Below the pieces are notes generated by a model. The model searched no databases, was not told the origin of the DNA, and was given only the letters and a program-made list of their open reading frames with translations. A stretch of 63,519 nt of DNA, filler included, from Pelomyxa schiedti (lineage: Eukaryota; Protista; Evosea): the NCBI GenBank assembly GCA_020536535.1. It is 11 parts of 11 records of this genome, joined end to end, with 100 filler letters (N's around TTAATTAATTAA, not from the genome) between each part and the next. Parts side by side here need not be neighbours in the genome. Positions count along the whole stretch, not along the records: positions 12,804 to 22,348 come from JAHLWZ010000205.1; 10 more parts are not named here. The stretch is one strand, 5' to 3'. Below, in pieces: positions 12,804-20,338 of this stretch (position 1 is its first letter; every line of letters starts with the position of its first letter). The translations under genes and the position numbers were made by a program.

Positions 12804-12968
12804 CTGCCGAAAGTGTTCGCTGTGCTTGGTGATGTGTACGACACTGGCCAATGTGGCATGGCAAAGGACGCGAGGGAGGCTGTGAGGTGGTACAGGCTGG
12901 CCGCCGCATCGACGCCATTATACCGGCGTCAAACAGACAAACTCAAGGCCTACATGGGAGGAAACTGA
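12804..12968 (+). CDS. 3' fragment of the Sel1-repeat gene (second copy)
   Basis: LPKVFAVLGDVYDTGQCGMAKDAREAVRWYRLAAASTPLYRRQTDKLKAYMGGN*; differs from 17050-17214 by one Q/R change. Confidence 0.85.
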   Translation: MPKVFAVLGDVYDTGQCGMAKDAREAVRWYRLAAASTPLYRRQTDKLKAYMGGN

Positions 12969-13829
12969 TGAACACATGAAAAACAAAGCAGCATACCCTT
13001 TTTAAATTAATCACCCTGTGACTGTTTGTCGATGTTGCATCTTAGAATGTGTGCAGGGTTTTGGATTCGGGTCTTCTTTCACATCTCTCGTGAAAGCAGG
13101 GATGTAGCGTAAATACCAAGCATAATATTAGTATGCCATGTTATCTATCCAGTACTGTGTATTGGTGAATGGTGCTCACTTATAATGTTTGAACAAATAA
13201 GAACAATTGTTTAATAAGAATGCAGATGGCATGCACCGCAAACCGTTTGGGGAGTAAGTTGGGTTCATTACCGGGTCTGTTTGAGATGCCTTCTTTGGGT
13301 TAGGTGGGTTGGAGAATGACTACCTCATAAGCACAAAGCCACCATGAATATAAACAAGCGCCGGAAAACCAGCAGCAGCTTTTAGAAGTGTAAGGGAGAG
13401 AATTTGGCAGGTAAAACGCACGAGGGGTACAGTGTAATCCTCTTGTGCAGGAATATCCACTATCTCAGCAAATACATGTGGCGTTCATCACCAAACTGCA
13501 ACCAACAGACCATAAAGTAAGTCATTTTCAAAAAGAAACCTAAATTATTTGGTAAATTATCGATAATGGAAAATTTTTATTTGTGGTTTACATTGTTTAC
13601 TCCGTGCCAGCCTCGCCGCCCACATTGGCACCTCAGCCACAACCTCGCGTATCACTACCAGCAGAACTAACATCCCGACACAACAGCGAAGGGACCCAGC
13701 TGATACTTATTGTGGGTTGCTGTGCGCCGGCGCACACCCAACACACCCACAAGTATGAATTTGGAAGTCCCTGTCACTTTTTATGCCCATTCGGGGAACC
13801 AAGTTCTTGCCGAGTGCAGAAAAGGAAAA

Positions 13830-13965
13830 AGACAACTGCATCGTCTCCGCACAGCTGTTGGTCGTTGGTTCAAATCCAACCATCGGGTGTGTTTGTTTGG
13901 AGCCGAACAAACTAGCACACAAGGTGTAGCTCAATTGGAAGAGCAGCAGAATGACCTCGTTGTCT
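13830..13965 (+). tRNA. Circularly permuted tRNA-like element, copy A (3' half 13854-13888, 5' half 13920-13950); isotype unresolved, Tyr-like
   Basis: T-arm GTTGG-TTCAAAT-CCAAC; variable loop TGGTC; acceptor 3' strand CATCGGG. Then a spacer hairpin, then TA-GCTC-AATTGGAA-GAGC-A-GCAGA (D-arm and anticodon 5' stem), where GCAG pairs with upstream CTGT. T12 run at 13989-14000. Confidence 0.6.
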
Positions 13966-14186
13966 CCAAATAACCACTCTGGCCCAAATTTTTTTTTTTT
14001 ACCTATTTGTGCTGAGGTGATGGTGACTAATTGTGGGTACTTTTAAGGCCACAGACCGAACATAATAAAAGAGAATTCTCCACACGCCTCTTCACGACCT
14101 CCGCACACTAAGCAATTTTCAGGGGTGTTACAAGTTTACAGTGGTGGTAATGCCACCACCAGACTTGAAGAATCTTATTCTCTGGG

Positions 14187-14377
14187 TTAGGGACTTATGT
14201 TGATTGGAAGAAAAGGATCATACCCATCTTGTGCTGATGAAGAGATGCTTGGAATAACAGTGGAATGGTAGGTGGTTGACCCACCTGATAGCGATTCTGA
14301 TGTTGCCATCCCAGTGCCGGTCAGTTGCTTGCTGCTTTCCGGCCTCATTTCGTCAAGGGGAGGGCCGCCTCCACAGC
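14187..14377 (-). CDS. C-terminal tail of the GPCR (second copy)
   Basis: Same sequence as 18360-18535 but ends ...GYDPFLPINISP* (TAA at 14187-14189). Confidence 0.75.
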
Positions 14378-14477
14378 NNNNNNNNNNNNNNNNNNNNNNN
14401 NNNNNNNNNNNNNNNNNNNNNNNNNNNNNNNNNNNNNNNNNNNNNNNNNNNNNNNNNNNNNNNNNNNNNNNNNNNNN

Positions 14478-15143
14478 CCACCATGTCTTGTGTGGGTTTC
14501 TTCTTGAAAGAAAACCCCTTTTCTTCTAGAGTTTGAAAGAACTTGTGGTTCTCCTCTTTGGTCCAGTGAGCTTCATTTGTGGAGGGTTTCTGTTGGGGCT
14601 GGGGGAAGTGCCTGTGTTGATGAGGAAGAGGTTGTACTGTGTGGAATTGAAAATCCACACAGTATCGAGTTCTCAACATTGTGTGAAAATGTTCTCGTAA
14701 TCTTTGGTTGTGGTGATTGCAACAACTCTGTGGTTTCTCTGGCTGACTTGAATGGTAGCTACCAACAGAAGCACTTGGTTCTCACCTCCCAGCTATTATT
14801 CAGTGACCCTTTGACAACAGGACTGATGTGGAACCTTGATGGCACACTATGCACATTGCACCACAAGGGGGGGTACTACGTTGCCAATTCCAGGCACCAC
14901 AGATTTCCCGAGGGGTGTCAAGTGACACAAATTGGCCAGTCACACCTGTTTGCTTCCCCACCAGAGTACAGGAGCCCATTCACAGTGTACCACACTGAGA
15001 CTGCCATGGCGTCGCCCTCCCTGAGTGTCCCATGCACGTGGGCATCTCCCAGCATCCAGCAACCATCAGGCCTCATTCTTTCAACAACTCACAGATGTGG
15101 TGCTGATGACGAAGCCACCTGTGCTCCCACTATCACTTCATGA
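14478..15143 (+). pseudogene. 3' fragment of a lineage-specific beta-rich family member, probably disrupted
   Basis: SVVSLADLNGSYQQKHLVL resembles LFVDLENSCAAGVVV of 49069-50244. In-frame TGA near 14504; 5' end lost in the N gap. Confidence 0.45.
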
Positions 15144-15415: not shown

Positions 15416-17214
15416 ATGCACAACCGCACGAAGAATAGCGGGAAGGGGAAGCGCCGCGAGACACAACACCAACAATCAGGGGGACCTGTGTCTCCTCCAC
15501 CATCGCAACAACAACCACCATCGCAACAACAACCATCTCCAACAAATGCCGATCCTTCAAATCGCTCTTCGTCGGCGTCACCGGAACGTACAACAAAAGA
15601 CGAGATTGCGGAAGAGTGCATAACGGCGTTTGCGTTGGGTGACAACGACCGAGCTTATGACTTCTGCATCGCACTCCTAACTGGATGCAACGACAGCATT
15701 CACCAAGGAAAAGCAACACTTCAAAATCAGCTGAGTGTCCTCGATCAAGTGCAAAAGCAGTTGCAGGACACCAAGTGCAAGGAGGGGAACAATGCACCCA
15801 GAAGTGGTGACAGCAAGAATGATGGGGGGCCGCTGGTTTCATCAGCACTTGGGCAACTGGTGTGGCTTTTCTTGGTTCTCACAGAGCCTAGGCTCCTCAA
15901 GCCGCTGTGGCCATTGGACAGAGTTGTGAGCTCAAAAAATGTGATGAGAAATGCGAAGCGTCATCCACTGAGTGCACAGAAATGGATGGTTGGGTTTCTG
16001 AAGAACATGACATCCTCTGTTGGTGCTGACAATTCACTGAGTTTTGGTACTTCTTCAATTTTAAAATTTTATCACGATTATTTCATAATGGCAATGAATG
16101 TAATTCACTTTTCCTCCAATTAGGTTACCTATCCTCCAAGAACTTGGCACACTTCCTGCTTGGAGTTGCCCTCTCCCTTGAGTACGGACCTTGGCCTTTC
16201 ACTGATGAGGCTTGCAGTATGGAACACATTAAAGTTGCAGCAGATGGTGGTGACCAAAGGGCACAGCATTGGATGCATAGAAAGCATGGTGCACAGTATT
16301 TGGCACTGCTTCGCAGGTCGGCCTCACAAGGATACTGCCCTGCCCTCTATGACCTTGGGTGTGTGAACATGGGAATGGGAGGGACCACGCCACTGTTGGA
16401 TGCTGCAGAGGGTCTCAGGCTGTTTCAAATTGGAGCTGATAGAGGAGATGCATGGTGCCAGATGCAGGTGGCCAGCCATCTGCCAGAGGCTGAGGCAATG
16501 AGGTGGATTAGACTTGCCTCTGACCAAGGCTTGCCTAGAGCACAGTGCATTATGGCAGGACCGGAGAAAAACAAAGATGCTGCATTACGCTTGCTGAGGC
16601 TCTCTGCTGCCCAAGGCATGGTAGAATCGCAATTGAGGCTTGGGCTTTTCTTCACCCTCAAAGAACCAAATGACTTCTTGGCCGCGGAGTACCTTACATT
16701 GGCTGCAAATGCAGGCAACCACTTGGCTGAATACTACCTGGGCAAGTGCTATCTGGCGGGAACAGGAGTTGAGAAGGACGACGCAGAGGCACTCAGGCTG
16801 CTACAGAAGGCCGCACAAGGCGGCATGCCAAGGGCCCACTGCGAAATTGGGATGATGTACTACCGAGGCACCGCAGCGACTCCGCGAGACATCAGAAAGA
16901 CCATTCACCACTGCAGGCTTGCTGTTCAACAGGACCCGGAGCAGACCGCCGACGCCTGCTTTCTGCTGAGCACACTCATGTTCGCTGGGGTCATTGCCGG
17001 CACCCCACGCGAGGCCATGGACTTGCTCCAGAAGTCGGCGGTGCCTGACCTGCCGAAAGTGTTCGCTGTGCTTGGTGATGTGTACGACACTGGCCAATGT
17101 GGCATGGCAAAGGACGCGAGGGAGGCTGTGAGGTGGTACAGGCTGGCCGCCGCATCGACGCCATTATACCAGCGTCAAACAGACAAACTCAAGGCCTACA
17201 TGGGAGGAAACTGA
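15416..17214 (+). CDS. Sel1-like repeat protein, 2 exons (15416-16046, 16124-17214)
   Basis: Repeated Sel1 consensus, e.g. AEYYLGKCYLAGTGVEKDDAEALRLLQKAAQGG and AHCEIGMMYYRG. A 77-nt GT-AG intron restores the frame. Confidence 0.9.
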
Positions 17215-18097
17215 TGAACACATGAAAAACAAAGCAGCATACCCTTTTTAAATTAATCACCCCTGTTAATTTGACTGTTGTTGTCGATGTTGCATCTTAC
17301 ACCCTTGCACATTCTCGGGTTTTGTATTCGGATCTTCTTTCACAACTCACATGGGCTCTGATCGAAACTTTGCCCGGTCCCTCGTGAAAGCACTCAGGGA
17401 TGCTGCGTAAATACCAAGCATAATATTAGTATGCCATGTTATCTATCCGGTACTGTGTGTTGGTGAATGGTACTCACTTGTGAGAATTTAATAATGTTTG
17501 AACATTATTAAAATTCTATTAATAAGAATGCAGATGGCATGTACCGCAAACTGTTTGGGGAGTAAGTTGGGTTCATTACCGGGTCTGTTAAAATGCCTTC
17601 TTTGGTTTAGATGGGTTGGAGAATGGATGACTACCTCAAGCCACCGCCATGAATAAACAACCGTCGGAAAACCAGCAGCAGCTTTTGTAAGGGAGAGAAT
17701 TTGGGTACAGTATAATCCTCTTGTGCAGGAATATCCACTATCTCAGCAAATACATGTGACGTTCACCACCAAACTGCAACCAACAGTGACTAAAAAGAAC
17801 CCAAATTATCTATAATGTTAAATATTAAGCACCTTGCCCATGGCAGTAACGCCACCCCCGCGCCCACAATTACTCCGTGCCAGCCCTCGCCGCCCATTGC
17901 ACCGCAGCCACAACCTCGCGTGTCACTACCAGCAGTAGCACCCCGACACAACAGCGAAGGTACCCAGCTGGCTGATAGCTTATTGTGGGTTGCTGTGCCG
18001 CACACCCAACACACCCACAAGTATGAATTTGGAAGTCCCTGTCACTTTTTATGCCCATTCGGGGAACCAAGTTCTTGCCGAGTGCAGAAAAGGAAAA

Positions 18098-18233
18098 AGA
18101 CAACTGCATCGTCTCCGCAAAGCTGTTGGTCGTTGGTTCAAATCCAACCATCGTGTGTGTTTGTTTGGAGCCGAACAAACTAGCACACAAGGTGTAGCTC
18201 AATTGGAAGAGCAGCAGAATGACCTCGTTGTCT
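18098..18233 (+). tRNA. Circularly permuted tRNA-like element, copy B (3' half 18122-18156, 5' half 18188-18218)
   Basis: Same arms as copy A. Acceptor 3' strand CATCGTG pairs 6/7 with CAAGGTG. A-box TAGCTCAATTGG lies about 60 nt downstream of B-box GGTTCAAATCC. Confidence 0.6.
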
Positions 18234-20005
18234 CCAAATAACCACTCTGGCCCAAATTTTTTTTTTTTTACCTGCTATTTTCAGGGGAGTTACAAGTTTA
18301 CAGTGGTGGTAATGCCACCACCAGACTTGAAGAATCTTATTCTCTGGGTTAGGGACTTTGATTGGAAGAAAAGGATCATACCCATCTTGTGCTGATGAAG
18401 AGATGCTTGGAATGACAGTGGAATGGTAGGTGGTTGACCCACCTGATAGCGATTCTGATGTTGCCATCCCAGTGCCGGTCAGTTGCTTGCTGCTTTCCGG
18501 CCTCATTTCGTCAAGGGGAGGGCCGCCTCCACAGCNNNNNNNNNNNNNNNNNNNNNNNNNNNNNNNNNNNNNNNNNNNNNNNNNNNNNNNNNNNNNNNNN
18601 NNNNNNNNNNNNNNNNNNNNNNNNNNNNNNNNNNNACAGTGGAATGGTAGGTGGTTGACCCACCTGATAGCGATTCTGATGTTGCCATCCCAGTGCCGGT
18701 CAGTTGCTTGCTGCTTTCCGGCCTCATTTCGTCAAGGGGAGGGCCGCCTCCACAGCAGCACTCGCACACCCGGTGGTGCCGCAGAGTGTTGCGGAGTTTG
18801 GAGAACAGGGAAAGGTCATAAGCGTAGAAAATACTGTTGAAAAATCCCAGTAGCGGCGCTGTACACACTTGAAGCAAGTATAAAATAAATACCTTGGTGT
18901 TGTTTAGTGGTTTGAGGGATTGGGAGAAACCGTACATCATTATCGGAAATCCAATTCTGTGGGATGTAAGAAAGAGGAGGTGCATTAAAAAAAACAACCT
19001 GGATTCGATTGACCATAGGAAATATCCACACCAACACAAATACAACAGGATAAATCGCAAGTTGTTGCATCATTATCTGAATGGAATTAATTGTTGAACA
19101 AAGCGAGGGAAAAAAACCTGATACGAAGTCCTTGGGCCGTTTCTTGCCAGAAGGAGACTCATTCTCGATTTGGCAAATGTTTTATAAGCCATGCGGAACA
19201 CCAGAACGTAGATTACAATCATTACGGTTGTACAACAAGACAGCGGTACGTAGAACGCCACCAGCTGCCACATATGACCAAGCTTATCCGCACTGGTTAT
19301 CCAGCACCAATAGCCGGCCGGCCCATAATCACTGGTATATGTGTTAGATATCATGGAGTTGCGTTTGTTAAGGGTTAAGTCGGCAAACCTTGTGAGGCAA
19401 GGGAGAATAGTCAGCAGAAACGCACCAAAGTAGACAAAGCCGAGCAAAATAATCTCGAATTTCAGAGTTGTGCCCTTTTTGAGGACCAAACCCCACAGTA
19501 GATGAACAGCAATCGCTGTGACCCAAGCAAATTCCATCTGGCATTACTGGATTAACCAACCGGAGAAAAAGGTCTGTGAAGCATACACACCACTTGTCCA
19601 AACTGCATTATTATCGCCTGGGCGATACAAAGTGGGTCCAATTCAGGCTTGGCTCCAATTCCTGCACACAATTGCGTTACTCTTGACCGCACTGCCAACA
19701 TACCAACAGGCACAAATCGACAATCAATCATTCCTGTAAGAGACATGTGTAGAGGCCATACCGATGCTCAACAAGTTCGCCAGGGAGGCAACGAGGGAGC
19801 TTGCCAGGAGGTACAGCACGAGCCTCGATGCTGTTGTCTTCCACTGCCTGAGGCACAGCGACACCAGCAGCACCGACGATGTGCCCGCGAGCGACAGGGC
19901 CGACATCGACACCCTCACCCACACGATGGCCAGCGCCTGCTGGTCGCTCAGCCTCCCGTCGTAGCCGCCATCGCTCTCTGGTGCTGGTGGGCTCGTGTCT
20001 GCCAT
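18180..20005 (-). CDS. 7-TM GPCR, cAMP-receptor-like/GCR1-like, multi-exon
   Basis: Seven hydrophobic segments; motifs SRLVLYL, CIAQAIIMQFG, YGPAGYWCWI, QLAIYPVVFVLVWIFPMVNRI, APLLGFFNSIFY; CECCC in the tail. The 18536-18635 gap is flanked by a 120-bp duplicated overlap (18416-18535 = 18636-18755), so the tail is probably contiguous. Confidence 0.85.
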
Positions 20006-20338
20006 CCTCCCCGTGGAGTCGTCGGGTGGCTGTTGCTCGCTCCTTTTGTTGGGTTTGTCAGTACAAATGGCGACCAACTGACGTGACGGCACGTGACTGT
20101 GCCACGGTCGTCGTCACGTTGAATCGTTCGTGTACGTGAACGAGAAAAAAATGAAAAGTTTTGATCGAGGCGGAGGAGGAAGCTTGTCAGCCGTGAGGCG
20201 TGACAAACCGCAAATGCCTGGCCGCTTTCAAATCACACTGCGGTTTTTTACTTTTTTGTTTCCCAGGTGTGAAGTTGTGTTTATGAAGACAACAGGCAGG
20301 GCATTTGTGTCAAATGTTTTTTCCCCCAATGAATGAAT

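Follow-up and report, generated by a model that had tools for sequence, protein, structure and literature searches.

Does a transfer RNA (tRNA) whose 3' half is encoded upstream of its 5' half have to be re-assembled into a working tRNA, or can the swapped halves serve as they stand, as a tRNA-like module in another RNA? This question is raised by a locus that occurs twice in a 63,519-nucleotide (nt) stretch of Pelomyxa schiedti DNA (assembly GCA_020536535.1; hereafter, the window), where an earlier note on the sequence had proposed a circularly permuted tRNA gene. We found that the locus is transcribed into a discrete RNA and that the layout of a tRNA mimic within a Y-RNA-like molecule fits it better than does a permuted gene giving a working tRNA. 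The reading we favor, with about as much confidence as doubt, is a stable, abundant noncoding RNA (ncRNA) that mimics tRNA, has the architecture of Y RNAs of the YrlA type, and probably derives from tRNA-Cys; its likeliest partner would be a TROVE protein (Ro60). This reading is supported by sharp transcript ends, a match to the full YrlA model, paired RNA ends, identity with part of human Y3, retention of nearly all tRNA tertiary contacts, promoter motifs, and conservation of the gene between the copies.

To define the transcript, we mapped four single-cell RNA libraries, prepared by template switching and oligo-dT priming from one "protist metagenome" sample, onto positions 13700-14059, which contain the first copy (copy A). 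Word depth was 0 at 13700-13807, reached hundreds to thousands over 13809-13988, and was close to 0 after 13989; the silent flanks serve as a DNA control for the RNA libraries. The template-switch oligo directly adjoined position 13809 in four of four runs (and also position 13812 in run X4), and a run of at least 21 A residues adjoined position 13988. This poly(A) is non-templated because the genome has T there. Because the 5' end (template-switch oligo) and the 3' end (poly(A)) are both sharp and the flanks are silent, the RNA is a discrete, linear, plus-strand molecule of ~180 nt (13809-13988). A minus-strand gene is ruled out by the same oligo and tail, which orient the RNA. The interval proposed earlier for copy A, 13830-13965, was therefore real as a feature but too short, as the reads extend it by 20 nt on each side. 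Many short contigs differed from the locus by one or two letters or by a 2-nt gap. In addition, a 193-nt contig in run X4 matched 13921-13975 (the D-arm side) with its last 56 nt, with four changes and one gap, while its first 137 nt gave no fit at 90% identity; it probably stems from a paralogue or orthologue that has diverged from the RNA. The variant contigs and the X4 contig indicate that several variants of the RNA are expressed.

Within the RNA, the swapped-half arrangement can be read directly in the sequence of both copies (13830-13965 and 18098-18233; plus strand throughout). In copy A, the tRNA 3'-half-like segment (13854-13888) comes first. It comprises the 3' strand of the anticodon stem, GCTGT (positions 39-43 of the tRNA; 13854-13858), a 5-nt variable loop, TGGTC (13859-13863), the T-arm GTTGG/TTCAAAT/CCAAC (13864-13880), and the acceptor 3' strand CATCGGG with T73 (U73 in the RNA; 13881-13888). 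An intervening sequence of 31 nt (13889-13919) is predicted to fold into a 9-bp hairpin, GTTTGTTTG/CGAACAAAC with loop GAGC, which closes and extends the acceptor helix. The tRNA 5'-half-like segment (13920-13950) follows with the acceptor 5' strand CAAGGTG (13920-13926), TA (U8 and A9), the D-arm GCTC/AATTGGAA/GAGC (13929-13944), A26, and GCAGA (tRNA positions 27-31; 13946-13950). Outside the two halves, AGACAAC (13830-13836) and GTTGTCT (13959-13965) are predicted to form a 7-bp helix, and UCGU (13841-13844) can form 4 bp with A32-A35 (AUGA, 13951-13954). The transcript is followed by a T12 run (13989-14000), a putative RNA polymerase III (Pol III) terminator, which is T13 in copy B (18257-18269). 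The earlier description of the locus was thus accurate in its anatomy: the order of the halves in both copies, the hairpin-forming spacer of ~31 nt, the perfect T- and D-arms, the 7-bp leader/trailer helix, the T-run, and the pairing counts (acceptor stem 5/7 in copy A and 6/7 in copy B, anticodon stem 4/5) are all as it gave them.

Copy B (RNA gene at 18077-18256, plus strand) lies 4268 bp from copy A, and only two differences, 13852 C>A and 13886 G>T, fall inside the RNA. A composite pattern of the 5' motif, T-loop, and D-arm occurred twice in the window and in none of 100 shuffles; because of this result and a match to the YrlA family at E-values of 1e-6 to 5e-5, the permuted arrangement is not due to chance. 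We examined the setting of both copies in the one 9.5-kb piece of the window that holds them. They sit within a segmental duplication of ~1.7 kb (12804-14480 and 17050-18760), in which identity is 99% over the RNA gene and the adjoining 75 bp upstream. The flank further upstream (~13035-13754) ranges from ~40 to 97% identity per 60-column window, mostly 65 to 90%, with many indels. Downstream, identity is again 98 to 99%, except for a ~110-nt insertion in copy A.

The predicted fold joins these elements into a rod that carries a tRNA-like core. In the lowest-energy fold of both copies, the read-defined ends of the RNA pair with each other, GCCGAGUG (13809-13816), which holds a candidate Ro60-type motif, with CACUC-U-GGC (13975-13983). 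Inward from this terminal helix lie an A-rich internal loop, the 7-bp AGACAAC/GUUGUCU helix, a 4x4 internal loop, the 4-bp UCGU/AUGA helix, a 9-nt/1-nt loop, and a 4-bp equivalent of the anticodon stem with A26-U44. The innermost part is a four-way core with the T-arm, the closed acceptor hairpin (CAUC/GGUG plus ~14 further bp), and the D-arm. The nine classical tertiary contacts of tRNA are those of yeast tRNA-Phe. Read from the sequence, eight of these nine could form in the core: U8-A14, A9-A23-U12, G45-G10-C25, G46-G22-C13, G18-U55, G19-C56, U54-A58, and A26-U44. The sole contact that fails is the 15-48 (Levitt) pair, which is A15·C48. A hand-drawn model in which a cloverleaf is set into the rod lies ~10 kcal/mol above the lowest-energy fold; since tertiary contacts do not enter the energy calculation, we do not count this gap heavily against the hand-drawn model. 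The tRNA-like module probably derives from a tRNA-Cys gene, given its U73, GCA, and UUCAAAU T-loop.

A scan against all of Rfam returned YrlA (RF02553) as the sole significant match. The alignment covered the entire model (1-114) at 36.1 bits for copy A and 37.2 bits for copy B (E-values between 5e-5 and 1.2e-6), so that full-length alignment is significant relative to random sequence, whereas the Rfam tRNA model, applied to a 221-nt locus, gave only a local T-arm match of 13.8 bits. The order of parts is the one found in YrlA: a closing stem formed by the ends (to which cmscan aligned the AGACAAC/GTTGTCT helix), a T-arm, a closed acceptor-like stem-loop, a D-arm, and a return to the stem, with the nucleotides for tRNA tertiary contacts kept. 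YrlA RNAs also have in common a 5'-proximal motif, GNCGAAN0-1G, similar to the GGUCCGA that Xenopus Ro60 contacts (PMC4201824). The mapped 5' end here, GCCGAGUGCAG, fits this motif with one mismatch, as counted at GCCGAGUG, while the site aligned by cmscan, GACAACUG, has two. The RNA differs from YrlA in that its gene is eukaryotic and nuclear, with a promoter-like motif pair upstream and a T-run; it is also longer (~180 nt versus ~110 nt), has an additional, terminal helix, and carries a far longer acceptor hairpin (~20 bp). In Mycobacterium smegmatis YrlA, the closed acceptor hairpin is cleaved by RNase P and CCA is added (PMC4201824); because of this precedent, partial tRNA-like processing of the Y-like RNA described here is conceivable.

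The terminal helix also invites comparison with the Y RNAs of animals (RF00019, especially Y3). The sequence CCGAGUGCAG, within GCCGAGUGCAG, is identical at ten of ten nucleotides to positions 8-17 of human Y3 (Y3 context GGUCCGAGUGCAGUGG; full human Y3 sequence from PMC4798961), and it corresponds to the Ro60-contacted region of the Y3 5' strand; Ro60 contacts mainly the 5' strand GGUCCGA (PMC4201824). The partner strand is CACUC-U-G here and CACUUG in human Y3. We estimate that, over the whole RNA, a 10-mer identity with any of the four human Y RNAs would arise by chance ~0.06 times, and far less often at the matching location. Animal Y RNAs are likewise small RNAs with paired ends, and the TATA-containing external promoter and the T-run that they share with type 3 Pol III genes have counterparts at this locus. 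Unlike animal Y RNAs, the RNA lacks the 7-bp lower stem, and a complete tRNA-like module here takes the place of their internal loop.

Upstream of the mapped 5' end, both copies carry a pair of promoter-like motifs. A box resembling the Dictyostelium upstream sequence element (DUSE), ACCCACAA, lies at 13745-13752, -64 to -57 from the 5' end (18013-18020 in copy B), and matches at seven of eight positions. A TATA-like box, TTTTTATG, lies at 13778-13785, -31 to -24 (18046-18053 in copy B). The DUSE, [AT]CCCA[AT]AA, is found ~63 bp upstream of Dictyostelium ncRNA genes (PMC3188802), and its distance is given as ~60-63 bp for many ncRNA genes transcribed by RNA polymerase II (Pol II) or Pol III (PMC3188802; PMC7919456). 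In relaxed form, [AT]CCCA[ACT]AA, the motif has only two sites on the plus strand of the 9.5-kb piece, each at -64 of a copy of the RNA. Given the DUSE-like box, the TATA-like box, and the T12/T13 run, we infer that the gene probably has a U6-like, small nuclear RNA (snRNA)-type external upstream promoter and hence is transcribed by Pol III. We additionally observed that two CACCCA repeats lie side by side at 13735-13752 and 18003-18020 (CACACCCAACACACCCACAAG), the second being the DUSE-like box at -64.

Combining these features, we propose that transcription would start at 13809-13812, downstream of the DUSE-like (-64) and TATA-like (-31) boxes, and end most likely in the T12/T13 run. The RNA ends would form a two-helix rod (GCCGAGUG/CACUC-U-GGC and AGACAAC/GUUGUCU) capped by an L-shaped tRNA-like module that consists of the T-arm, the D-arm, the 5-nt variable loop, and a short equivalent of the anticodon stem. 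The acceptor stem of this module would be closed and extended by a hairpin, as in the bacterial YrlA Y RNAs, and the 5' strand of the terminal helix would present the sequence that resembles the Ro60-contacted motif of animal Y RNAs. Such an RNA could function as a Y-RNA-like scaffold, in which the rod binds a TROVE-family protein, with Ro60 the first candidate, and the tRNA mimic recruits or occupies factors that recognize tRNA.

Several observations weigh against this proposal. The YrlA scores of 36-37 bits are about half the family's gathering score of 69 bits. When we scored 20 metagenome loci with tandem tRNA genes on the same model, their tRNA junctions gave 19.7 to 34.7 bits, and tandem tRNAs are a class of false positives named by the authors of the YrlA family (PMC4201824). 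Because these controls reach 34.7 bits, we read the YrlA match as evidence of layout (stem, T-arm, closed acceptor hairpin, D-arm, stem) and not of homology. A dimeric tRNA artefact is ruled out for the locus itself, as its two halves pair together and neither flank contains a remnant of a tRNA. The absence of the Levitt pair (A15·C48) is a further departure from YrlA. The Y3 identity could be coincidental because the A-box/D-arm of class II tRNAs (GCCGAGUGG) is similar to the 5' motif; a phage tRNA-Ser matched our search pattern for that reason. The bulge of the terminal helix is on the 3' strand here and on the 5' strand in animal Y RNAs, and neither the Rfam Y_RNA (RF00019) nor the Vault (RF00006) model matched the 221-nt locus at E<=10.

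The 3' end and the searches for partners and relatives add to these points. The captured complementary DNA (cDNA) ends at 13988 in poly(A) with no U-tail, in libraries that see A-tailed molecules only because of their oligo-dT priming, and AAUAAC lies 17 nt upstream of this end, so that Pol II transcription with polyadenylation is conceivable. For some Pol III RNAs, trimming of the U-tail and addition of an A-tail are reported. Either the U-tail was trimmed and the RNA then A-tailed, or Pol II makes a short poly(A)+ transcript here. We found no Ro60/TROVE domain among the ten larger open reading frames (ORFs) scanned in the 9.5-kb piece. The criterion for YrlA is a Ro60 gene within ~4 kb, but this linkage is a feature of bacterial operons and would be unexpected in a eukaryote. 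Finally, our searches yielded no relatives. A metagenome scan with the composite pattern gave at least 120 loci, and among the matches listed all were tandem tRNA genes; two scans of viral contigs gave phage tRNA arrays only; a scan of prokaryote genomes with an exact 24-mer from the D-arm side gave no match; and a protein-database search with an open frame across the RNA, which could have revealed spurious ORFs of relatives, gave no candidates. Because the two copies are 99% identical, and hence not independent, and no relatives were found in the metagenome, viral, prokaryote, and protein searches, there is no covariation support for the fold.

The alternative that survives best keeps the tRNA mimic and changes its partner. 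The same transcript and fold evidence would also support an amoebal vault-type RNA bound by the TROVE domain of TEP1, or an RNA that acts as a decoy for, or regulates, La, export factors, or enzymes that bind tRNA. TEP1 is a vault component in Amoebozoa, where vaults occur, and vault RNAs, which have been characterized only in Metazoa, are made by Pol III, contain tRNA-like boxes, and have ends that pair (PMC3762200); a TROVE-protein partner, a candidate for the RNA described here, would be a further likeness. In vault RNAs, however, the A box precedes the B box and full T- and D-arms are lacking, whereas here the D-arm (A box) follows the T-arm (B box), and the Vault model is without a match, as noted above. 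The 5' motif, moreover, specifically matches the Ro60-type motif. We regard a partner other than Ro60 as unlikely.

Alternatively, the locus could be a relic or repeat derived from tRNA, for example what is left of a tandemly duplicated tRNA-Cys gene or an element resembling a short interspersed nuclear element (SINE); it would be transcribed and polyadenylated with no specific function. Some tRNA-derived SINEs share a poly(A) tail and an AAUAAC-type signal upstream of a T-run, and the captured RNA has both the poly(A) and an AAUAAC upstream of its T-run. The several expressed sequence variants suggest a multi-copy family, the acceptor and anticodon stems contain mismatches, and tandem-tRNA junctions score nearly as high on the YrlA model. 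Against such an origin, neither flank holds a tRNA remnant, the order of the A and B boxes is wrong for a SINE promoter, and the two copies lie within one segmental duplication and are not separate insertions. The precise ends and high abundance of the RNA, its three nested leader/trailer helices, the retention of nearly all nucleotides for tertiary contacts, and the dedicated upstream pair of promoter-like motifs kept in both copies also speak against it. We consider a functionless relic improbable.

We return to the permuted tRNA gene with which the question began. Reports of permuted tRNA genes are confined to a few algae, a nucleomorph, and one archaeon (Cyanidioschyzon merolae, prasinophytes, the Bigelowiella nucleomorph, and Thermofilum); in the algal genes, the halves are inverted and separated by 1-74 nt of intervening sequence, a TATA-like box precedes them, and a T-stretch follows (PMC3978253). 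The locus has this same organization, with inverted B and A boxes, a 31-nt spacer between a 3' half and a 5' half that pair with each other, a TATA-like box, and a T-stretch. On this account, a linear precursor would lose its leader and trailer and be circularized by ligation of its ends, the hairpin would be excised by RNase P and tRNase Z, and CCA would be added; the closed acceptor hairpin of M. smegmatis YrlA, which accepts both the RNase P cut and CCA, provides a precedent (PMC4201824). The product would be tRNA-Cys with anticodon GCA, or tRNA-Val with anticodon GAC if the halves are joined at 37/38, for which the 4-bp helix between A32-A35 and UCGU lies at the place of the central helix of a bulge-helix-bulge (BHB) motif.

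In-silico re-permutation, which the earlier note had suggested as a check, gave a divided answer. Spliced copy B passed ARAGORN at its default threshold, as Cys-GCA with the loop AUGCAAA when joined at 33/34 or 34/35 and as Val-GAC when joined at 37/38, but copy A passed only at -ps90 (90% threshold) and, in the Cys register, carries C at position 37. The perfect AUGCAAA anticodon loop in copy B and U73, a Cys identity element, strengthen the earlier hint at Cys. ARAGORN found no tRNA and no transfer-messenger RNA in the genomic sequence of the 9.5-kb piece. In its circular mode, it returned nothing at default from four excerpts, and at a relaxed threshold it gave many contradictory results, with anticodons that differ between the copies.

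The structure of the precursor argues further against maturation. The earlier note could form no canonical BHB, and we found none either, nor a relaxed form (hBH or HBh'): the 4-bp UCGU/A32-A35 helix has a 4x4 internal loop (CCUC/UGCA) on one side and a 9-nt loop (CUCCGCACA) on the other, in place of 3-nt bulges. In both copies, A31 faces G39 as a mismatch, and one or two A·G mismatches occur in the acceptor stem; copy A has two, which are adjacent. The re-permuted RNAs fold at just -15.6 to -18.7 kcal/mol, with a lowest-energy fold that lacks a full cloverleaf. A pre-tRNA has no need of the long two-helix rod made by the leader and trailer, and the terminal helix and the 20-nt extensions are left without a role on this reading. 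We observed only the full-length linear form and no back-joint (circle or permuted junction) inside the element in the four runs; this is weak evidence, as assembler contigs from oligo-dT-primed libraries are incapable of showing a circle or a mature tRNA. The permuted layout proposed in the earlier note thus stands, and the spacer, the TATA-like box, the T-stretch, and the ARAGORN result for copy B agree with it, but the locus does not make a convincing source of a working tRNA. That it is a genuine circularly permuted tRNA gene, processed by the route outlined above, appears to us very improbable. If the RNA were matured to tRNA-Cys, permuted tRNA genes would extend to a new eukaryotic supergroup and to processing free of a BHB.

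We return to the tRNA-mimic, Y-RNA-like reading and to what it would mean. Under either functional reading, a eukaryotic RNA that is abundant and sets a permuted, closed tRNA core in a Y-RNA-like rod is new, and each reading would be new for this part of the tree. In the literature searched, tRNA-mimicking Y RNAs are described from bacteria and phages only, and animal Y RNAs are without such a module. We tentatively suggest, as a possibility short of an even chance, that this is the first eukaryotic YrlA-type Y RNA: bound by Ro60, equipped with a complete tRNA-mimic effector module, and produced from an snRNA-type gene of a protist, probably an amoebozoan. Binding by Ro60 would link the bacterial and eukaryotic branches of Ro60/Y RNA and bear on their origin. 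If the YrlA-type reading is true, tRNA mimicry is either ancestral to Ro60 ribonucleoproteins or evolved twice, and the locus would offer a eukaryotic system for asking what the tRNA-like module recruits.

The neighbors of the RNA gene, a Sel1-repeat ORF and a Dicty_CAR-like G-protein-coupled receptor (GPCR), are eukaryotic. At 18503-20092 (minus strand), several ORF pieces resemble exons of a multi-exon seven-transmembrane receptor gene; they are Dicty_CAR-like in a protein atlas (score 0.91) and have a weak GPR_Gpa2_C match. This receptor-like neighbor supports a eukaryotic nuclear origin of the locus. Two features of the duplicated segments stand apart from the RNA gene. The ~110-nt insertion (14003-14111), which copy B lacks, lies immediately 3' of the T-run of copy A, between flanks that are 98 to 100% identical in the two copies. 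A 121-nt unit occurs three times at 100% identity (14257-14377, 18415-18535, and 18636-18756) beside runs of N (e.g., 14378-14477), and may be a genuine short repeat or a scaffolding artefact. The Sel1-repeat ORF encodes 356 amino acids (16144-17214, plus strand; Pfam PF08238, 5e-30), and its 3' end falls in the duplicated segment, where 17050-17262 is 100% identical to 12804-13016.

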